NCBI GenBank assembly: GCA_013115145.1
Contig: JAAPAO010000242.1
Span: forward strand, 1-48,317
Direction: 5' to 3'
DNA: 48,317 bases
Origin: Perkinsus chesapeaki ATCC PRA-425
Lineage: Eukaryota > Protista > Perkinsozoa
This document shows positions 36,428 to 48,283 of this stretch, piece after piece. A program made the position numbers and the translations under genes. Position 1 is the first letter of the stretch. Each line of letters opens with the position of its first letter. The notes under the pieces are model-generated. The model did no database searches and had not been told where the DNA came from. It saw only the letters and a list, made by a program, of their open reading frames with translations.

Positions 36428-36775
36428 CTCGGGGTAGTCGTTCTCATCGTCCTCCGAATCGTTGATGTGTTCTCGTGTGAACTAGAATAATAATGCTTGT
36501 CTTTGATTTATTATCTATTGCATGCCTGCTTTGTTAACGTCCCTTGCCCTTTGTCCGGGCATCTGTTTTCACTGTATTCTATTGCTACTATCATAAAGTT
36601 GTGGCCCTAGTCGAGGAGCTGCATAGCAATCCCAACCCTGGCCGGTATAAATGCCTAATAATGAAGCAATCTGCATATATCTCTAGCTTTGAGTTGGCGA
36701 TAAATATTGAGGAAACAGCGGAAAGCGACATCGTCATTGATGATGTTCCCCGAAGGTTCTTTTGCCCTATCAACC

Positions 36776-37711
36776 ATGCCAACGACTACAGTCTCTCAGC
36801 TAGCTTCTCTACTAGCACAGCAAAAACCAGTGCTCAGTGCCGCTAGGATGGCAGTAAAGTCGAGGGCCATGGTTGCGTGTATTGTTAGGGCAGCTCCTCG
36901 CTCACCCGGTACAGCAGAGATGCTGCTCATACGCCGAGCTGTCCGAGAGGGAGATCCTTGGTCCGGCCAAACCGCGTTCCCGGGAGGCCGCTGCGAGCCT
37001 AAGGATTACGGCAGCGATTTGGCTACGGCGATTAGGGAGGCTAACGAGGAAATAGGCGTTGATCTGAGTGATGAAAGACACTTTAAATTTCTGGGCCGGA
37101 TTAACGATATAGAGCTGTATCGCTCGGGAAGGGTCCATATGGTAGTAGGGTGCATGGTCTTCCATCAGCTCGCCCCACAACCGATTCGCGTCGACCCGCT
37201 TGAAGTGGCGGCTTGTGGTTGGGTGCCTCTGTCGGTGGTTGGACAGGCCACCAGTGGAGACCTTCGTATAGCGTATTGGTCTGTACCCAAGAACTGGGGA
37301 TTGCCCTCTTACCTCCATAACTATCTCAGTCTCATAGGCCTCAATGAGGTCGCTCTAGCAACGCTTCCGATAGACCTCCAGGATGCTGTTAAGGCTAATC
37401 CTGACGTGAAGGTGGATGATCTTGACCTTTGGGGCCTCACACTGCAGTTTGCTATGTTGATAACACGCGACCCTGGTGATCCTCTCGTCGTCTATAGGAA
37501 CCTGCCCGTATGCGGACTGCGAGTGCCTCATAAGTATCGATGGCCTGTCCATGATCTTGGGCTCGCTTTGTATCACACTATTTGGGACAAGGCCAGGTTG
37601 CGCCACGGTTCGGCTGTTCATGTGTCATATTTCTGTTTTTTTCATTGCTTACTGGCTGCGGTTCTCACGGCCGTTGGAGTGGCCACCGCTCGTCTTCGCA
37701 GTCGGCTGTAA
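36776..37711 (+). CDS. Nudix hydrolase, CoA-pyrophosphatase (NUDT7/8)-like, copy 1, intronless
   Basis: LLIRRAVREGDPWSGQTAFPGG followed by the Nudix box ...REANEEIGV; hydrophobic C-terminal helix. Confidence 0.85.
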   Translation: MPTTTVSQLASLLAQQKPVLSAARMAVKSRAMVACIVRAAPRSPGTAEMLLIRRAVREGDPWSGQTAFPGGRCEPKDYGSDLATAIREANEEIGVDLSDERHFKFLGRINDIELYRSGRVHMVVGCMVFHQLAPQPIRVDPLEVAACGWVPLSVVGQATSGDLRIAYWSVPKNWGLPSYLHNYLSLIGLNEVALATLPIDLQDAVKANPDVKVDDLDLWGLTLQFAMLITRDPGDPLVVYRNLPVCGLRVPHKYRWPVHDLGLALYHTIWDKARLRHGSAVHVSYFCFFHCLLAAVLTAVGVATARLRSRL

Positions 37712-37834
37712 AGTTTTCTATCCGTACTGTTGTGGTGTTTGTATCAACTTGGGAAGGCTTCTGGGCTCGGTCAGTCTCTTGCAACTCGGCTTTGCGGGAA
37801 TGTGGTTCCTAGTTTCAGTTCATTTCATTTCCTT

Positions 37835-38770
37835 ATGTCCTCTCTGACGCTGCCTGAGATCGCGGCCCGACTAGCCCAGCAGTCTCCTCTACTAAGCGCT
37901 GCAAAATTGGCCGTGAAATCTCGAGCCATGGTAGCATGTATTCTTCGACCTGGTCCACGACTGGTAGATAGCGCTGAGATGCTTCTTATTCGTCGGGCTG
38001 CTCGAGAAGGAGATCCGTGGTCCGGCCAAACTGCATTCCCTGGCGGCCGATGTGACTTGGAGGATGGTGGCTGCGATCTGGCGACGGTGACCCGTGAGGT
38101 TCAGGAGGAGATCGGCCTAAATCTCGCCAACGAGGAGCACTACAGGCTACTGGGAAGAATTCGTGACCTTGAAACGTTCAGATCTAATCGCGCTGTCCGT
38201 ATGGTAGTTGGCTGTTTTGTATTTGAGCAACTCAGGCCAGAGCCATTGGAGCTAGCTGTAAATGAAGTTGCGGCTTGTGGATGGCTTCCAGTCGCAGCTG
38301 TAGCCTGTGCTAGGGAGGAGGACGTCAAGGAGGTCCAGTGGAGTATCCCAAATGCTGACCCCGCCTATTGGTACTTTAGGCTTCTTGGCTTAACTGAAGT
38401 GACGCTCCCCTCTTTAGTAGTCAGTCTGAAGGATGCCACCAAAGCCAGTCCTGATGTCGAAGTCACATCTTTGAATCTGTGGGGTATAACGATGTGCTTC
38501 ACGCAGATTCTAACTATGGACACCTCTCGGGCCCTACTGCCCTACAGGACAGTGCCGATAGTGGGATGGAGAGTACCGCATATATTCAATCCTTTAATCC
38601 ATGACCTCACTTTTTCCCTTTACAGAGCAGCCTGTCGTAAGGAGGATCTCACGGAGCACGCCTCTGGTATAATTTTGTCATATTTGAGATTCTTCCACTG
38701 TCTCTGTGGAGCAGCAGCATTCACTGCTGCTGCTGGCTTGTCATACTTGGGCATCCGTAGCAAACTTTAA
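37835..38770 (+). CDS. Nudix hydrolase, CoA-pyrophosphatase-like, copy 2 (tandem paralog), intronless
   Basis: LLIRRAAREGDPWSGQTAFPGG...REVQEEIGL; colinear with copy 1 along its full length. Confidence 0.85.
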   Translation: MSSLTLPEIAARLAQQSPLLSAAKLAVKSRAMVACILRPGPRLVDSAEMLLIRRAAREGDPWSGQTAFPGGRCDLEDGGCDLATVTREVQEEIGLNLANEEHYRLLGRIRDLETFRSNRAVRMVVGCFVFEQLRPEPLELAVNEVAACGWLPVAAVACAREEDVKEVQWSIPNADPAYWYFRLLGLTEVTLPSLVVSLKDATKASPDVEVTSLNLWGITMCFTQILTMDTSRALLPYRTVPIVGWRVPHIFNPLIHDLTFSLYRAACRKEDLTEHASGIILSYLRFFHCLCGAAAFTAAAGLSYLGIRSKL

Positions 38771-39151
38771 TATTTCACTCGTTCGAGGAGCTGCGTTTTA
38801 GTCACAGTAAGTCACTTAATGTTTTCTTCGTCAGCAAGAAGATTCGTCGAGCTCCGTCGCTTGTTGTCTTCTGTTCACATTTAGGACTCTACATTGGGTA
38901 TCTTTCGGTGGAGCTATTGAAGAATATATTTGTCACAGCGTTGTGAAAGTTAGATCTTAAATCTCGGTAATCTTCTTCCTAAGAGAAGAGAGTAGAATTG
39001 AATTTTCATGAGATATTTGTCCTACCTCAGCTTCACCAGAACCAGTCTCCAATGATATTCTCAATACTAGCGATAATAATCGACCTGGGTTGCTTGACAA
39101 TGGGTGATATTACTACCATTACGAGCGACTTAGTTGACTTTGTTCATCTAA

Positions 39152-42100
39152 ATGTGCGACTTCGATTCTTGTCTAGCCAAGGTCGGCCTCGGCACGCATC
39201 CACAGTTGGGGGGTGGACAGCATGTGGACCTGAAAGCCGTTGGAAGGAGGAAGCGGACCCGCCGAGAGCTCCGGGCACCGCTAGAAGTCAACGACCAAGA
39301 TGGACTTGAAGTTTTCGGAGAAGAGGGGCAATTGTGGTCTGAGAGCATCGGTGCCCTGCCAAGAACTGAGACGCATTGTCTTACGGGTCGATTTGAGTGT
39401 CTGTACACCGAGCACGTGACGCAAAAACGGAAGCGCTTCCACGAGGGATTTATAGTTCTTCAGCAGGAAGCTGGAGTTAGCCTATTTAGTATGGATTCCG
39501 ACGATGCCATTGACAGTATTATATGGAGTTATACTCTTCGGCGAGACTGGAATAAGGCAAAGGCTGCCGCAGCTACGCTGGAGATGCTGCTCCAGCGGCA
39601 TATCGTTAGGGTGGAGTTCGGCACCGGGATGGGTGGAACTGTTCATACCACTGGCAGCTCAGGCATCAACGCGCGTGCGCGAGGGAGCGTGAATGTCGGG
39701 ATTGTCAGCGCGGATATGTTCCGCTCAGCGGCGGCCATCGAGAGCTCTGCATTCGGTGGGATCGGCCGAGCGTCACTCGATTCTGGGAGTGGCCGCTCGT
39801 TTGGCCCAGTCGAGGACGGGGAGTTCGAGGCAATCTTGCGGAGGGCCAAGGCGGAGGCCATGCCTCAACAGGAGGATGATCGTGCACCTCTTCTGCTTCA
39901 ACCCAGTAAGGTAGCACCTCGGGCATTTCCCCTGACAAATGCGGCTCAAGAGGCTACCGAAAAGAAGAGGGCCATTCCCGAGTTTCCCGCTTATTGTCCT
40001 CCAAGCACGCCATTCGACCTTCTTGACTTGGACTTTGCTGTGCCGTCCAAGGATGCTTTGGTCCCAGCGATTTCGTCAAGCTGTACTCCGTCTCCTATCT
40101 CGTCGCTACACAGTTACGCCCTTCATTACCTTGACGTTTTCTATAAGGCCATTTACTCTTCTGTTAAGGAATTGTCTGTGGGCGTGTCGCGTCGTGCAGC
40201 AGACGGCACCGTGGCTGGGCTTAAGAGATGTCCGCTAAGTTCAACGTGTAAGTTGAAGATCACCGATAAGGGCGATGCCAGGCTCTACTTTCCAGAACAC
40301 TCGGTGGCAGCCACTAGGAAGAAACGCGGCGGCGGAGCACGAGTGTTTCTAAAGTCCTCTTCTGTCCGTGAGAAAGCTAGTCATGTTGATACTCCTGATG
40401 TGTTCGTCCTCCTTGTGAAGGGAACGTGGGCTGTCTATGCTACGGCGTGGCGGGGTATGAATCCTCAAGGCCTTCTCCAAGTAAAGCCCTTAACTGAGGC
40501 GACGAAAAAGCTCCAAGAAGGCCTCGTGGTCGGAAGCACTTTATCCTGTGAGCGCCTGCACTCTATTGCAGGCATCAGCCAACGGCTGCAATACATAGAG
40601 ACCCTACGGTCATTGTTGGGTGCTAAGAAGGAGGATACTAGCGACAGCGAGAACGACTTCTTCAACGCCGGGCTGGCTTCTCGAGCTCACCTTGATCCCA
40701 CAGGCAGCTGTTGTACGAGTCTCTGTCTCCTTGGAGGTCAGGGCAGCCATCGGCTCCTCGGTCATTCTCTTAGCCTTCCTGGAGCCGTAGACCTCGACGC
40801 CTGCATGACGGCGACTACGGAGAAGTTTCCTGGGCTTAATTCAGAGCAAGTAGCGGTCCTTGAAAGGGTTAAGGATTGGTTCTCTACCGCAACTGCTGAG
40901 CCGTTACTCGTTGTTCAAGGAGTCTTTGGGTCTGGAAAGACCACGGTATTGGCCGCTATAGTGGCCCTGCTATACGAGATCCTAGTTGAGTCTCTCGGAC
41001 CAGTTGTTCCCGTGGCCCATAGGAGAGTGGGCTTGCTTGCCCTAACAAATGTAGCCGTTGACAATGTACTGTTAAAGCTCCAGTCGAGGGGCTTTGAAGA
41101 CTTTGTACGCTTGGGTGTCTATGACCGTATTGCCGCCAGCATCAGAGACCGATTTTATGCGAGGACTCAAAGTCGAGCTCAGAAGGAAGGCCCGCAGGGG
41201 TTGTCGGTCCTAGAGTGGAAGGCCCGATCGGTGGTCGCATCGACGCTGGCAGCTGCAGCGGATATCGCTCCTGGGGTAGGGTTGAGCTGCTGAGTGGATA
41301 CTGGTAAGTGTCATCATTTAGGTGCCATGCCCCTTCGTGGTGATTGACGAGTGCGGTCAGGTGACTGAGCCATCTTTGATGTTGCCGCTGATGCGCAGCT
41401 TGCGGCCTGTTCGAATCATTATGTTTGGCGATCCAAAGCAGCTTCCTCCTCCACCAGATGAATGCCCCATAAAAGCGCCTTCGGGTTCCGCATCGATTCT
41501 TCAATTAGTCACCGAGAGGCAGTGTCTGCAGCGTGGTGAATGTGCCCCATGTGTCGTTCCAGGCACGCCAGTCGCCGAGGGAGAGCTCTAATTCGACAGC
41601 AGCACCTGAGGACACAGTACAGATGCCACCCAGATATCGCTGCCATATGCTCTACTCTGTTCTATAACTGCCAAGTCTGCCAGCATTGTGCCAGGCGCTA
41701 CAGCTCAGTATGTGTCAGGTGTTAACTGAGTATAGAGCCCCGGCAACTGGTGCTCCCCTTCCTGGCATGTCTGCTGTGATTGCCTTTCAGCATAGGAGCA
41801 GCTCCGCACCCTTGAGGAAGGGTAAGGTGCTTGAGCCCTGCAGACACTTTCCTTGGGGCTCAGGTGACTCATTATATAATCCGGAAGAGGCCGATATTAT
41901 AGCCGGTTTGGTTCAGCGTCTTACCGGTCGTACTAGAGATATTTGCGTGATATGCATGTATAGGGCCATGGTGCAGGAAATCAAGGATCGGGTCTGTTTC
42001 GCTCCGTTTCGTTCTTAGCGTTTCTCCTAGCTCCTCGATGTTCAAATTCAGATAACACAACCCATCACCGTTGCCACTGTGGACAGTTTCCAGGGCTCTG

Positions 42101-42370
42101 AAGCCAGTATCGTCATCATCGCCTTGACCTACCAAAGAGCACAACGCACCGGTTTTGGTATATCTGTTGGCTTTTCACATTTAGTGTTTATCGGTTTCAG
42201 GCTTCTTCATATCGGACCCCCAGCGTGCGAATGTCGCCATCTCCCGAGCTCGGGATCACTTAGTGGTCGTCGGACACGAAACCGCCTTCAATCGCAGCTC
42301 GACGCGCGTTTGGCCTTTTGTCTACGAGAAAGCTCAAGTAGTGTCATCGCTTGATGCGCTCAGCGTCTAA
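39152..42370 (+). CDS. ZGRF1: ZGRF1-like SF1B (Upf1-like) 5'-3' helicase with an N-terminal DUF2439-like domain
   Basis: FECLYTEHVTQKRKRFHEG (DUF2439-like). Helicase motifs GVFGSGKT, TNVAVDN, IDECGQ, GDPKQLPP, QYRCHP, TVDSFQG and NVAISRAR. Confidence 0.75.
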
Positions 42371-43342
42371 TAAAGTTGTTCCTGTTTCTCACGGCATGAC
42401 CAAAGTGGGAATTTGCATCGGTCCTCCCAGTCTCTTTCGTTATGCCCCCCCTCCATCAGCTGCCCCTCGTTAGGTTTTTGTGTATAAATGACTATCATAC
42501 CATTGGAGCGTAAAGGGCAGCAGCCACGTTTTAACCGAGAGGAAGCTCCGGAAATACGCACTAAAGCCTTTGTGAGAGTTGCTGTTCTAGTGCTTTCAAC
42601 GCTATGCTCCTTTCCAGGATTCCTCGCCCAGGGCCTCGTCGACTATTGAAAAATACCTCACTGTGTCGGACACGCCGCGGTCCTTAGCCATACGTTATCG
42701 CCCGGAAGAATTGAGGGAACCTAATACCAGCGCTGCCCTCGCCAGAGGTGGTACCAGAAACCGTTTCTGCAGAACGCCCTGTGGCGGCGGCAGTTCATTG
42801 GGATTGAGGCTGATCCTTTTTCAGGTGGCCCATGTAGCTGCCCGTCATGCCAGCAGTCTAGCAATAGCCGCGCTTACAATGTCACCAGTGCCTGTCCTGT
42901 GCTGAGACTATCACTTGAGTTCGGGTTAGAGGATCCACTTGCTACATCACCGGATGAGCCTGCCCGGGGATATCTATGGTTGCTTTCACGACTTGTGCAA
43001 GCTCGAGCAAGGTGAAAGGTGACTACAACACAAAGCCATGTCGTCCAAAGGTGCCCTGTGAGCGTCCCCGAAGTTGTCTTCTTCCGGAATGGTATCCCCT
43101 TCCGCTTCTTCGCGATGGGAGGAGAGAAGGGTTCCATCCTGACAATGACAGTCAAGAGGCGTGACAATGTCTCGGAGATGAGAATCGGTTAGGAAACGGA
43201 ATTCACTTATCTGCTCAGATGAGGTTCTTTTCTGGACTTGGTAGGCTTTAGGTGAGCTCCTGAAGACCTTATACCGTTTGGAGCGAAAGCGGTACGGCCA
43301 GAGTGAAGCATATATAGCGAGAGCCTTCAGCAGTGATATCAA
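42367..43342 (-). CDS. Probable spliced hypothetical gene; structure unresolved
   Basis: Several protein-like ORF fragments on the minus strand fill the gap between neighbouring genes. No recognisable domain. Confidence 0.3.
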
Positions 43343-43434
43343 TGCAGCAGACGAAAGTGAGGTTATTCGACTATATTAGCCATAGTTGTGTGTCTAAGAG
43401 TTTTCTCGAGTAGGCCGGGTTCGAGAGAAGACGT

Positions 43435-44466
43435 GTGAGCCTTTTAAGGACTGCGAGGCTGTCCTTCTCATACGTTACATTGACGGAGCAGTTCGTTTGG
43501 TATCGGCAACCGAGGCGAGTCTCCTCATCACAACTTGGCTCCAGCTGTAGTTTCAGCTACGATCAATGGTACTTCAACGTCGCACTAATCGCACGGCCTG
43601 GTTGGACGTGGCATGGTTCTCCACGAGGCCTTATAGAGACGAGAACTCCTCCGTAATGCTCTCTAAAAAATTCAGTTCTGCCCTCGAGTTGCACCGGATC
43701 AAGCTTGAAGCTACGCTAACTCGGCTCGGTCCCCTACATCTTGTATATAGTTTCCCGGTGGCCGCCGCTCGACGCCGATATCGTATCGGTTCTTCAAGCC
43801 CGGTGCAGAAGCAGTGGTGACTATTGGCAGCGGGGGCGGTGACGATGTCCAGGAGCAGCTACCATCACCACTAGAAGGCATGAATGCACGAGCTCTGTAC
43901 CTCCCGGAAAAAGCTCAATTTTCAGAGCGTGTGCGGAGAAGTGTGATGAGAATAGCAGATCTACTGAGCCCGCAATGGAGGCTTTGGGGAGGCTTTTTCG
44001 AATTCGAGTTCGACGCTCTCACGGATCGTGTATGGCTAGTTAGCGCATCACATTTGAAGGTGGAAAAGAGTGTGTCGCCCTTCGAGACTCTTCCTGAGGT
44101 CACACTTGTTCGTCCTCCCCATACGTTCGGAGCTAGTTCCTGTCAGGTAAAACTTGAAGCAGAAGAAGATCAGACGGATGGTGAAGCTACTAAAGTGTGA
44201 TGTGGTCTTACGAGGTGTCTCTCAGAAGAGGCGATCGAACAAGAATGGGATGTCGTGAGCGGACCTGAGGAGATAGAGGCATGGTTGGGATCCAGAGAGG
44301 CCGAGCTTGGCAAACTAGTGGCACGCTGGAACTACGAGGTGCCATTATCGCTGTGGACGGTGATAATGCTGCTAATTGGCAGGTGCAAGAGGAAAGAGAT
44401 CGAAGAGAAGAGCGGTTGATGAAAGAATTCACTGCTGATGGTGACACATCTATAACAGAATCGTAA
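43435..44466 (+). CDS. Probable spliced hypothetical gene with a C-terminal coiled coil
   Basis: Fragments such as RVRRSVMRIADLLSPQWRLWGGFFEFEFD and VQEERDRREERLMKEF are separated by short GT-AG segments. The start is unresolved. Confidence 0.45.
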
Positions 44467-44500
44467 CGGCATGCGCTCTTGAAGTGCTTGCCACTCTAAA

Positions 44501-44743
44501 TTAGGCGGCCGCATTCCTCTGAAGGGCTGGCAAAGCGGCAAAGCGTAACCACTCAAGTGGCAGAAATCTCAAAACTATGGGGAAAAGAGGACCTTGTTCC
44601 CATGCCTCATGTGGGTCCCCTGCACAACTGCGGATTAGCTCCATCTCGGTCTGCTCCGTCATCGGGTGCGGTACCTTTGCGATCAGATCCTCCATCGTTA
44701 CCGTGACTGTACATCCAAGATGGAGGCTTTCGCATCGCGTCAT
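44501..44743 (-). CDS. Possible small hypothetical protein
   Basis: Protein-like segment MEDLIAKVPHPMTEQTEMELIRSCAGDPHEAWEQ; no other support. Confidence 0.25.
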   Translation of the reverse strand: MTRCESLHLGCTVTVTMEDLIAKVPHPMTEQTEMELIRSCAGDPHEAWEQGPLFPIVLRFLPLEWLRFAALPALQRNAAA

Positions 44744-45013
44744 TTGACGAATGGCGATCGTGATATCGGCGGAGAGAGTTTGCTAGTTGCGAGTGAATCA
44801 TCGAATGCAGAGTTCTCCGGGTAGGCTTAGGTGCCCCTCCAAGCTGCGGATTAGTGGTGCCCCGTAGTCAACACGAAGTTTCAATTTCGAGTCTGGGGGA
44901 AGAGTCGAGTCCATGCGATGCTCATATTAGGGATGATGTTATTTCATAGCAACCAGCAACAGCTTGAGTTAGCCTGCCTTCCTACATCTCTGTTCCGTAG
45001 TCAGGATTATACA

Positions 45014-45579
45014 ATGCCACAATTCCCACTGCGGCTTGCCTCTGTACTGGGTTTCCGAGCCTTGGATCCGCCTCAAGACACCCTTGAAATTCCAGAACCT
45101 CCTCGAACACGCCGACGGTGCTTGTCTGGGTCCCTCTCCTCCTGGGTGGAAGTTCAGTATGCCAACGAGAGATATCAGTCGATTCCACCATATAGGGAAT
45201 CCTTCCAGAATCCCTCTTGGGTGAGCATAGGAGCATTGGGAGTAGCTCGTGTGATTACACTACTTTCGTGCTTCAGATTCCGGCTCATACTATCGAGGTG
45301 GAGCCAGTTCCCGCAGAAGCCTCATGTTGCTGGGCTCCCAACCTAGGCATGAAGACTCCAAATCCATCTCAATGGATATTGGCTAAGATATACTATCCTT
45401 TATTCCACCAGATGCTTCTTCCTCCCGAGTATCTTACGCATACGGTATCCCTTCGCTATATACATGAGGATGACATCATATCGGTTACGACTAGCAGTAT
45501 AGATCCGGACTCACTCCTGACTGAGGAGTCCTTCAGTATTGTGGACGATTCCGACGATTCTGACTGGGAGGAGTTGTGA
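45014..45579 (+). CDS. Hypothetical protein, 2 exons, about 169 aa, acidic C-terminus
   Basis: A 56-nt GTGAG...CAG intron (45221-45276) joins the two ORFs in frame; ends DDSDDSDWEEL*. Confidence 0.6.
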
Positions 45580-45861
45580 GGACTGCCCCCGCCACGCTTT
45601 GATCCCCCTTCACGCCTATGATTGAATTACCTAACGTCTAGCCGTTTGTGTTAACATCGAGTTTAACTCGGCAGTCCTAAGCTGCCACATCATGATACAA
45701 TTATCTGCTGTCACTATCATTATTACCTATATACGACAAGCGCTGCATTTGGCTCGCACGAAGCTCATTCCGCTATTGCGTTGCAAGTGTCATGTGAGGA
45801 GTTGCAAAGAACATGCTCAACTCGACTGCAAGCATTTGTGTGTTTGTACCTTGTTTGCTTG

Positions 45862-46763
45862 ATGCTTTCATGCCTGGCGCGATCCATCGGACGATCGGCT
45901 CCAATTGTTGCTAGGACTTCACCACTTGTGCCTCTACGGCATCGGTGTCATAGCTGTAGTAAAGCTAACTTCGATACTGTACGTTTAGTGCAGAAAGAAA
46001 ACCCTAATACATGGCACCTCATCCTCGAAAAACAATTCAGTCAGAAATGGGTAAGCTCATCTTCATCATGTATGATAGCGCTCAGCCCGCGGGCAGTGTG
46101 GGATCCAAAATTTGAGGGTATTTTCGCAGTTGCCGCCTCCGATACGACTCGTCCACTGCGACAACCCCCAGTGCAAAACCTGTGCGGTTCTACGGGAGAC
46201 GCGCCCTGAAATTAGAACACTCAACCATGGGTGGATGGAAGAAAAAGAGCTCAGCTGCAGGTCAAGTAACCTTGTGTACGCGTTGGAGTGCCGTGGCTGT
46301 GGGGTCCTGTAAGTTTTGGTACACTGTATCACCGTCCTCACTTCTTTCCTGCTTCCAGTTACGTCGGCGAAACAAGACGGGAGCTTCGGCATCGAGTTAG
46401 CACTCATCTTCATGTGAAGGCCAACGGTCCAATGAGCATCCACTATCGCAGCGACGGAGATATTTGCCCTCTTTGCGCAGGTGAAGGGTTTGATGTCAGC
46501 TTGGGGTTGCCAGTAGTTTAGTTAGAGCAGGTAACTCAAATGAAAGCCTTCAAGGAGCAAATCTGGACAATTTCGACGTGATGATTCTCGAGAGTCTCAC
46601 TGAGGAGGATTTTGGAAACCCGTTAGAGCAAGGCCGACTACGGCGAGCTCGAGAGCGCTGGTGGATGCAAAAGCTGCATACTGTTTGGCCATTGGGTTTG
46701 AACAATCGTGGCCACCGATTCGCAGATGTTCCCCGGCCACATTCATCACTAATTTCTGTTTAA
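45862..46763 (+). CDS. Penelope-like-element-type GIY-YIG endonuclease with Cys motifs, 4 exons, 240 aa, no RT
   Basis: GT-AG introns 46051-46129, 46309-46358 and 46481-46530 give a stop-free frame: CDNPQCKTC...CRSSNLVYALECRGCGVLYVGETRRELRHRVSTH...ILESL...RERWWMQKLHTVWPLGLN. Confidence 0.88.
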
Positions 46764-47049
46764 AGTGAAAGTTGTAATTGAGCGAACGTGAAGTAGCACA
46801 CCTGTTGTTAATGATGTTAATATTGTCTTTGCATACTGTGGTAATATCTCGCTTGCACGATTTCATTTCATCAAACATTGAACATTGCTGAAGCTTCTGA
46901 TGTGCGTGGTGCCGAGTTACGCAAGTCATCGACAGTATCTTATTAAGTTTCTTCAGGCTGGCACGATATACCGCTTGGGAGCGGAAAATTCAATCCTATG
47001 TTCATTTTTAACGTGGTCGGACTGCCTTAAATGGCTAAATTAAATTAAG

Positions 47050-47111
47050 TGCCTTGCTGGAGTTCCGCTCTTTAAAAATGCCTTGCTGGAGTTCCGTTCT
47101 TTAAAAATGCC
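47050..47111. repeat. 29-bp direct tandem repeat x2 (TGCCTTGCTGGAGTTCCG[C/T]TCTTTAAAAA)
   Basis: Directly visible; one mismatch between the copies. Confidence 0.9.
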
Positions 47112-47295
47112 GGTTTCATCATGACATCATTTTTCCCATGGCGCGGGAGTTGGCTGTGGCAACTTCAAATGTGCGAGAAGCTCCTCAATGCTCCTGAATC
47201 AGAGAGTGAGTTGAATTCTGAATCGGAATCGAAGGGTGCAGATAGCGGTGCATGGCGCGCCTTACACGCTACCAGAGTCATGCCGCCTGCAGATT

Positions 47296-47368
47296 GCTGG
47301 GATGGTCTAGCTGGTTATGAGTCTGCCTCACACGCAGTAGGTCCCGAGTTCGACTCTCAGTTTCAATA
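47296..47368 (+). pseudogene. Degenerate tRNA-Val(CAC) (R1)
   Basis: 1-nt deletion near the D stem/anticodon stem, plus acceptor (TTTCAAT) and T-stem mismatches. Confidence 0.75.
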
Positions 47369-47442
47369 CTCATGCGACTGAATGTGTTGATTAGATTATC
47401 ACATAGAGGTGCGCACTAATAGAGTCTGATCACCTGTAGATT

Positions 47443-47516
47443 GCTGGGATGGTCTAGTTGGTTATGACGACTGCCTAACACGCAGTAGGTCCCGAGTTCG
47501 ACTCTCGGTTCCAGTA
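47443..47516 (+). tRNA. trnV: tRNA-Val(AAC) (R2)
   Basis: 74 nt with all stems paired (some G-U); anticodon loop CT-AAC-AC. Confidence 0.93.
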
Positions 47517-47591
47517 TTCATACTACTACCTGTGTTGATTAGATTATGATAATGAGATGCGAGCTCCTAGAATTTTTCGTCGCTGCAGATT

Positions 47592-47665
47592 GCTGGAATA
47601 GTCTAGTTGGTTATGACGACTGTCTAACACGCAGTAGGTCCCGAGTTCGATTCTCGGTTCCAGTA
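47592..47665 (+). tRNA. trnV: tRNA-Val(AAC) (R3)
   Basis: Intact cloverleaf with one extra U-G pair in the anticodon stem. Confidence 0.88.
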
Positions 47666-47738
47666 TTCATACTACTACCTGTGTTGATTAGATAATGATA
47701 ATGAGATGCGAGCTTGTAGAATTTTAGTCCCTGCAGAT

Positions 47739-47812
47739 GGTGGAATGGTCTAGTTAGTTATGACGACTGCCTAACACGCAGTAGGTCCGGGGTTCGATTC
47801 TCGGTTCCAGTA
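47739..47812 (+). tRNA. trnV: tRNA-Val(AAC) variant, possibly a pseudogene (R4)
   Basis: Acceptor mismatch (GGTGGAA), D-loop GG changed to AG, and a T-stem mismatch (CGGGG/CTCGG). Confidence 0.6.
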
Positions 47813-47866
47813 TCATCCCACTGTGTGCCTTTGCTTGGATCGTTACGCACTACCGTTCCGTGGCTC

Positions 47867-47940
47867 GCTGAGATGGTCTAGTTGGTTATGACGACTGCCT
47901 CACACGCAGTAGGTCCTGTGTTCGATTCTCGGTTCCAGCA
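47867..47940 (+). tRNA. trnV: tRNA-Val(CAC) variant, possibly a pseudogene (R5)
   Basis: One A-C acceptor mismatch and a T-T mismatch in the T stem. Confidence 0.6.
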
Positions 47941-48001
47941 TCATCCCACTGTATGCCTTTTCTTGGATCGTTACGCACTACCGTTCCGTGCTTGCTGACT
48001 C

Positions 48002-48075
48002 GCTGGGATGGTCTAGTTGGTTATGACGACTGCCTCACACGCAGTAGGTCCCGAGTTCGATTCTCGGTTCCAGTA
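48002..48075 (+). tRNA. trnV: tRNA-Val(CAC) (R6)
   Basis: Intact cloverleaf; anticodon loop CT-CAC-AC. Confidence 0.93.
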
Positions 48076-48136
48076 TCATCGCATTGTGTGCCTTTGCTTG
48101 GATCGTTACGCACTACCGTTCCATGATTACTGGCTT

Positions 48137-48210
48137 GCTTGGATGGTCTAGTTGGTTATGACGACTGCCTCACACGCAGTAGGTCCCGAGTTCGATTCTC
48201 GGCTCCAGTA
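48137..48210 (+). tRNA. trnV: tRNA-Val(CAC) variant with two acceptor-stem mismatches (R7)
   Basis: Acceptor is GCTTGGA/CTCCAGT; the other arms are intact. Confidence 0.6.
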
Positions 48211-48283
48211 TTCATAAAACTAGCTGTTTGATTAGATAATGATAATGAGATGCGAGCTTGTAGAATTTTAGTTCCTGCAGATT

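Follow-up and report, generated by a model that had tools for sequence, protein, structure and literature searches.

The GIY-YIG endonucleases (ENs) of Penelope-like elements (PLEs) are distinguished by a CCHH motif, two cysteines of which lie between GIY and YIG (PMC8557442). Those of the Neptune, Nematis and Naiad elements additionally carry a C-x(2-5)-C-xx-C linker; EN-containing (EN+) PLEs with both motifs are known from animals and from one transfer to conifers, and the non-animal Chlamys elements are without both (PMC8557442). ENs that carry both of these zinc-finger-like, PLE-specific motifs are linked with animal retroelements (PMC8557442). Homing endonucleases with the zinc motifs "have not been found", and stand-alone examples have been described only beside the rotifer Terminons (Craig et al. 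2021, PMC8557442); the source of the PLE endonuclease is an open question in the main survey of these elements (PMC8557442).

We describe here a gene at positions 45862-46763 of the forward strand of a 48,317-nucleotide stretch of Perkinsus chesapeaki ATCC PRA-425 DNA (JAAPAO010000242.1, "the window" below), which is one complete 48.3-kb contig of the 41.7-Mb, 3544-contig assembly that was searched as the genome in this study. A first-pass annotation of the window had drawn attention to an intron-bearing, PLE-like GIY-YIG nuclease without a reverse transcriptase (RT) at this place, and had left two readings for it, a nuclease adopted by the host or one that acts in trans for a split or non-autonomous mobile system. 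We put the probability at roughly 80% that it is a real, single-copy, selected and RT-less nuclear Perkinsus gene for a free-standing PLE-type GIY-YIG endonuclease of 240 amino acids. What is new is that an alveolate encodes a PLE-type endonuclease in a stand-alone host gene under selection; the enzyme type is otherwise known from animal PLEs.

Gene structure, motifs and the Perkinsus olseni orthologue

Read and translated directly from the DNA, four exons and three short GT..AG introns (79, 50 and 50 nt) restore a frame of 240 codons at 45862-46763 (+). Exon 1 (45862-46050) supplies 63 codons and ends in phase 0 before the gtaagc of intron 1 (46051-46129; 79 nt, gtaagc..cag, phase 0). Exon 2 (46130-46308) encodes a zinc-knuckle linker and the first half of the GIY-YIG core, which is cut between CGVL and YVGET by intron 2 (46309-46358; 50 nt, gtaagt..ccag, phase 2) within a leucine codon. 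YVGET, the predicted catalytic Arg and His and a lineage-specific H-Y-x5-C-x2-C follow in exon 3 (46359-46480), and after intron 3 (46481-46530; 50 nt, gtgaag..gcag, phase 1) exon 4 (46531-46763) encodes an acidic spacer, the predicted catalytic Glu and Asn and a short tail that ends at the TAA stop codon (46761-46763). Intron 3 contains a stop in frame with exon 3 (tag, 46519-46521), and an alternative in-frame acceptor (ag, 46526-46527) 3 nt upstream of the one used here would yield 241 codons. In the analyses that follow, the exons of the window gene were examined one by one (45862-46050, 46130-46309, 46360-46479 and 46530-46760), and whole-protein analyses used its natural orthologue from Perkinsus olseni, P0009.

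A representative search of 1.84 billion proteins with exon 2 returned one real match, P. olseni KAF4700678.1 (P0001; 78% identity, E 4.7e-28), which is deposited as a "hypothetical protein" and bears the UniRef name "GIY-YIG domain-containing protein". Six matches to bacterial repeat proteins, each over a Cys-rich stretch of 12-37 residues, were discarded as spurious on account of the Pfam content of those proteins. A word search with P0001 together with the listing of its cluster added four further P. olseni entries from several isolates. KAF4695994.1 and KAF4704673.1, of 247 amino acids each, have the same junctions as the window gene, so that the three canonical introns and the 240-residue frame proposed in the first-pass annotation are both readable in the P. 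chesapeaki sequence and matched by a four-exon structure that was annotated independently in the second species. P0009 and P0010 (247 amino acids) carry the full layout through RERWW..GLN and look correct as models. In the remaining three of the five P. olseni GenBank models (P0001, P0008 and P0011), far-downstream exons replace RERWW..GLN, and the Glu and Asn are lost with it. At the locus that encodes P0001 (L010, JABANO010037126.1), the only such locus that was read, RERWWMQELHTIWPRGLN is encoded in frame at 1381-1508, right after the point at which the model splices out; since this DNA keeps both motifs in frame, the C-termini of the three models are probably mis-annotated. The P. olseni proteins are thus in the public databases, under automatic annotations that give them no name; the window gene itself appears to be absent from the public proteins, as no protein of this genome came back from either protein search.

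The upstream cysteine cluster, the GIY-YIG core and the catalytic residues that the first-pass annotation had listed as a full PLE endonuclease layout are present as it described them. The linker, H-C-x4-C-xx-C (H-C-DNPQ-C-KT-C), lies in exon 2 at 46157-46183 (+), and the core, SCRSSNLVY-x3-C-x2-C-x3-YVGET, begins at 46268 (+) and spans intron 2. The predicted catalytic Arg (46393-46395, +) and, four residues past it, His (46405-46407, +) are in exon 3; the Glu of RERWW (46653-46655, +) and the Asn of PLGLN (46701-46703, +) are in exon 4. All six predicted catalytic residues (Tyr, Tyr, Arg, His, Glu and Asn) are kept in the window gene and in P. olseni. With respect to the CCHH motif, the two cysteines (ECRGCG) between GIY and YIG and the first histidine (S-T-H) are present. 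One histidine aligns with the "HF" of PLEs, and the region where the second histidine of CCHH usually lies is occupied by an insertion of about 17 residues, which follows the conserved H(Y/F) and includes C-P-L-C and an acidic run; PLEs have a variable second histidine at this place. C-P-L-C rather than the second histidine may complete the cysteine pair here; the confidence of the structural model described below is under 50 in this region, too low for an assignment of the metal ligands.

Upstream of the endonuclease region, residues 27-63 of exon 1 contain a highly conserved H-x-C-H-x-C and several tryptophans. Exon 1 is without a Pfam match, and it scores about 0 bits against the PLE EN profile described below. 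In both species the first 26-36 residues include four to six Arg or Lys and neither Asp nor Glu, and residues 1-26 of the window protein are basic and free of acidic residues.

Assignment to the PLE endonuclease group

The P. olseni orthologue scores 22.9 bits against the Pfam GIY-YIG model, for which the cut-off is 22.6. Exon by exon, the window gene gave nothing meaningful in Pfam, because intron 2 splits the core. In a word search of 5.8 billion sequences, a 173-amino acid PLE endonuclease fragment from a Tara Oceans contig (P0012) matches residues 64-226 of P0009 (E 1.3e-6, 30% identity over 94% of the region). The patterns conserved in the alignment of these two proteins retrieved 13 metagenomic loci, four of which carry single open reading frames (ORFs) of 836-891 amino acids in which the PLE-specific DKG motif (4/4) and a YxDD box are followed by an endonuclease at the C-terminus. 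Pfam recognises RVT_1 weakly in two of the four and GIY-YIG in two of the four, and their predicted architecture is that of a canonical PLE as laid out in PMC8557442. The conserved patterns brought up no relatives in IMG/VR viral contigs or in prokaryotic genomes, a word search with exon 4 gave no candidates, and sequence searches of the PDB gave no match (phmmer finds no similarity to I-TevI).

A hidden Markov model was built from the endonuclease domains of nine metagenomic PLEs, Perkinsus being left out, and its targets were scored locally. This PLE EN profile matches the P. olseni orthologue with 72 bits over profile positions 42-182, from the linker to GLN. In the window gene it matches exon 2 (34 bits, positions 43-94), exon 3 (13 bits, positions 96-113) and exon 4 (16 bits, positions 139-182) in colinear order, and the linker H-C-DNPQ-C-KT-C aligns with that of the metagenomic PLEs. 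Four other GIY-YIG domains of the same genome, which served as controls, score 5-12 bits. Because the same four exons are annotated independently in P. olseni and the profile matches three of them colinearly, the combination of motifs and splice structure is far beyond chance.

Six further places in the genome match the Pfam GIY-YIG model. Other GIY-YIG genes were noted on contigs C338, C3240, C192 and C916 (loci L004-L007) and on C1304 (L008); that of C916 is not among the ORFs scanned. The four scanned ORFs are three PIF1-helicase fusions and one MutS_V plus GIY-YIG protein of the MSH1 type. We considered these genes as possible paralogues and rejected them as such, as they are fused to helicase or MutS and reach only 5-12 bits with the PLE EN profile.

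Features and predicted shape point in the same direction as the profile. The nearest neighbours of the protein in ESM-Atlas feature space are eukaryotic clusters (Cnidaria, Chordata) of 205-261 amino acids with GIY-YIG and HTH_animal. An AlphaFold2 (AF2) model made with a 15-row alignment has a predicted local distance difference test (pLDDT) value of 70-83 in its core; a single-sequence AF2 model of the orthologue was unusable (pLDDT 31). The best solved match of the former is the catalytic domain of I-TevI (1ln0_A), with Z 8.2 and a root-mean-square deviation of 2.7 A over 85 of 92 residues at 22% identity, and weaker matches are T4 EndoII, PD-T4-3 and UvrC (Z 4.7-5.3), HIGLE (Z 3.0) and Slx1 (Z 2.8). 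The nearest Atlas shapes, with template modelling (TM) scores of 0.41-0.52 by query, are mollusc- or chordate-labelled clusters of 940-1005 amino acids that combine GIY-YIG with RVT_1 and HTH_animal. In a maximum-likelihood tree of 14 endonuclease domains, the Perkinsus protein lies among the PLE sequences (support for the group 83/95) and not with the helicase- or MutS-fused domains; its branch is very long (2.84) and carries a warning of long-branch attraction, and the tree is poorly resolved and has an unreliable root. The controlled profile test, the language-model features and the shape together support the prediction that the gene product is a PLE-type GIY-YIG endonuclease, closer to the endonucleases of PLEs than to other GIY-YIG groups.

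Copy number, conservation and selection

The first-pass annotation had named copy number as a check on its proposal. A DNA search finds the 1.3-kb locus once in the assembly, the exon 2 and exon 4 proteins match only themselves genome-wide at E<=1, and a full-length PLE profile (A3, made from the four metagenomic PLE ORFs) has exon 2 as its sole match in the genome; there is one copy by all three measures. With every HMMER filter switched off, A3 matched exon 2 at 26 bits in the six-frame translated window and gave one more, faint match to exon 4; its RT part was unmatched. Neither direct nor inverted repeats were found flanking the nuclease gene, and no hammerhead ribozyme or any other Rfam family was matched at E<=1 in 44500-47300. 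The earlier statement that no RT or terminal repeats are visible nearby thus stands after a filter-free profile search, a repeat search and an Rfam search. The decayed retroelements that had been reported from the window were not recovered, as the window ORFs that were scanned gave no RT.

These results bear on the idea of a split or non-autonomous system, in which the gene would encode a nuclease that acts in trans for an EN-deficient PLE or another RT element elsewhere in the genome. RVT_1 has at least 150 matches of other kinds in the genome (none of them, among the matches listed, on the window contig); stand-alone nucleases with both zinc motifs do occur beside rotifer Terminons (PMC8557442), and the predicted catalytic residues are all intact. 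Nonetheless, the full-length profile detects no PLE RT in the genome or the window, no repeats or ribozymes flank the gene, it is single-copy and keeps a fixed syntenic place in both species, and its pattern of selection resembles that of a host gene (below). This half of the original proposal received no support, there being no PLE RT detected in the genome and the locus being fixed in two species, and we regard it as improbable.

The comparison with P. olseni supplies the evidence on conservation. In an alignment of the two DNAs all three introns, GT..AG in both species, lie at identical codon positions. P. olseni intron 1 is 68 nt long (gtgagc..cag) and 61% identical to that of the window in a forced alignment, intron 2 is 48 nt long, and intron 3 is 47 nt long and 49% identical. 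The exons are conserved, with third-position changes, and almost nothing of the introns or of the flanks on either side can be aligned. At the protein level the window gene and its P. olseni orthologue are 65% identical in exon 1, 81% in exon 2, 68% in exon 3 and 60% in exon 4. Synteny had also been put forward as a check, and intron positions and upstream gene order are both kept: the same upstream gene (ending ..DSDDSDWDEL) and the same gene order are found at the P. olseni loci L010, L025, L026 and L028, a 313-kb P. olseni contig has the NUDIX and helicase genes in the order of the window, and the arrangement recurs in several independent P. olseni assemblies.

Nei-Gojobori counts, made per exon and summed, give proportions of nonsynonymous (pN) and synonymous (pS) differences of 0.18 and 0.76 between the species; because the synonymous sites are saturated, this places dN/dS well below 0.25 and allows no finer value. 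Between the two P. olseni allele classes dN/dS is 0.28 and 0.10, the former inflated by a terminal indel that was handled ungapped, and all copies are open. Evolution of the gene is therefore strongly non-neutral by the dN/dS check that had been suggested, with pN far below pS between species and values of about 0.1-0.3 between P. olseni alleles.

Canonical PLEs have their endonuclease at the 3' end, so that 5'-truncated, endonuclease-only copies are common. An ordinary truncated or dead PLE fragment, in which introns appear to restore a frame by chance, would on this general ground be a conceivable source of an isolated GIY-YIG domain, and it would fit the blank exon-wise Pfam result. It would not fit the same three GT..AG introns at the same codons in P. 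olseni, with synonymous sites saturated while the protein is 60-81% identical per exon; nor would it fit a gene that starts at an ATG of its own, has an N-terminal exon without relation to PLEs, is present in one copy only and showed no PLE 3' structures. We consider this explanation very improbable. Being single-copy, intron-bearing, well conserved and without RT, the locus behaves as an ordinary host gene and not as transposon debris. Copy number, synteny, conserved introns and purifying selection speak for a host-adopted nuclease, the other half of the original proposal.

The genes of the contig and their orthologues belong to Perkinsus, a genus that orthology with P. olseni confirms for this DNA. 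Upstream on the same strand come, in order, two NUDIX ORFs, a ZGRF1-like/AAA_11 helicase gene, the gene with the ..DSDDSDWEEL terminus and then the nuclease gene. The NUDIX ORFs are in tandem and are followed by the ZGRF1-like N-terminal domain and the AAA_11 helicase within 36707-42370 (+); one GenBank model on the 313-kb P. olseni contig merges NUDIX and helicase into one protein of 1902 amino acids. The gene directly upstream of the nuclease gene (42400-45579, +) encodes the acidic ..DSDDSDWEEL tail; it is conserved in P. olseni, where its model (625 amino acids) has no Pfam family. A parasite of bivalves such as Perkinsus, whose hosts have PLE-rich genomes (PMC8557442), could in principle yield a contig contaminated with mollusc DNA, and a mollusc-labelled cluster is among the nearest Atlas shapes. 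The gene, however, lies between Perkinsus-type genes on a 48-kb contig, in an order that recurs in several independent P. olseni assemblies; its introns are short (47-79 nt), like the intron of about 46 nt in the neighbouring helicase gene; its GC content at third codon positions (0.49) lies inside the range of the neighbour genes (0.44-0.56); and no PLE protein in the library of 1.84 billion resembles exon 2 at E<=0.001. Contamination therefore has a negligible probability in our estimate.

Downstream, a tandem array of seven tRNA-Val genes (47296-48211, +) starts 530 bp after the nuclease gene and reaches the contig end. ARAGORN assigns anticodon CAC to four of them and AAC to three, the periods are 135-149 nt, and 5/7 score high enough for the Rfam gathering cut-off. 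At 47047-47104, some 190 nt ahead of the array, a 29-nt unit occurs in two copies that are 93-96% identical. We rejected a link between the nuclease and this array, as the syntenic P. olseni loci hold no tRNA genes; the array is therefore a lineage-specific neighbour.

Several points weigh against our reading of the gene. Look-ups of transcript contigs for the orthologues returned genomic contigs only. Three of the five P. olseni models drop the Glu and Asn motifs, so the predicted 3' end of the gene is not fixed by these data. Confidence in the AF2 model is no more than moderate overall (mean pLDDT 52.6). The PLE set was retrieved with patterns that are partly derived from Perkinsus and may favour its nearest PLE relatives, and the genome search with A3, a profile of four related PLEs that was run behind a first-look filter, could miss EN-deficient or divergent PLEs. 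Finally, the N-terminus looks like a mitochondrial presequence by its composition only.

Possible role, origin and comparison with known systems

A PLE-type endonuclease kept as a host gene would have a role in DNA processing (recombination, repair or turnover) instead of retrotransposition. Its site of action might be organellar, as the presequence-like N-terminus would allow, a suggestion that we hold tentatively and think somewhat less probable than a site elsewhere.

Two routes to such a gene can be envisaged from the sequence comparisons, exaptation of an animal-type PLE endonuclease or descent from a free-standing nuclease, and we favour neither. For the first, a PLE could conceivably have been acquired from the mollusc host. 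Any PLE capture predates the split of P. chesapeaki and P. olseni, and as the protein library holds no PLE near exon 2, it must be old or have come from an unsampled lineage. For the second, it is a rather unlikely proposition that the gene is a survivor of the free-standing zinc-knuckle GIY-YIG lineage that gave PLEs their endonuclease, and that it serves this myzozoan as a DNA nickase targeted to an organelle. If the gene was captured, it would be a clean case of PLE endonuclease domestication in an alveolate parasite of molluscs (clams and oysters), possibly after host-to-parasite transfer; if it descends from a free-standing nuclease, it would represent the missing free-standing ancestor of the PLE endonucleases. 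Under either route, a self-contained PLE-type nuclease of 240 amino acids could be expressed and assayed without an RT, which would be useful because relatively little is known about PLE transposition, according to a 2024 paper (PMC11167929). We found no paper on Perkinsus together with GIY-YIG, nor on this gene, and the literature that joins Perkinsus and Penelope concerns, to judge by titles and abstracts, other subjects.

The closest described relatives are the canonical linker PLEs (Neptune, Nematis and Naiad; cd10442, GIY-YIG_PLEs), with which the Perkinsus gene shares the linker, the two cysteines and the order and spacing of the R, H, E and N residues. It differs from them in that it is not fused to an RT, has no RT nearby and is present in a single copy; in the three spliceosomal introns of its coding region, one of which passes through the GIY-YIG core; and in the unrelated 63-residue N-terminal exon and the C-P-L-C insertion of about 17 residues. 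The canonical zinc-finger EN+ PLEs, moreover, have been reported from animals only, apart from the one conifer transfer (PMC8557442), whereas the Perkinsus gene is found in an alveolate. The endonucleases of the rotifer Terminons (Athena group) are, like it, free-standing ORFs with C-x(2-5)-C-xx-C and CCHH-type motifs (PMC8557442). As compared by their description and not by sequence, however, they have large unique insertions and lie inside giant telomere-associated retroelements.

I-TevI, the homing endonuclease of a phage T4 group I intron, shares the fold, and the R-x3-H spacing of the Perkinsus protein is that of I-TevI R27 and H31. By analogy, the catalytic residues that the two share imply that both nick DNA with one metal ion in the same way. 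I-TevI differs in having no cysteine clusters, and it has a C-terminal DNA-binding domain that is absent from the Perkinsus protein. SLX1, ANKLE1, plant HIGLE and the C-terminal domain of MSH1 are much weaker structural matches, and the Perkinsus protein is without their RING, ankyrin/LEM or MutS partner domains; as host-encoded GIY-YIG nucleases of DNA repair and recombination, they nevertheless offer a functional analogy for a domesticated enzyme of this kind.

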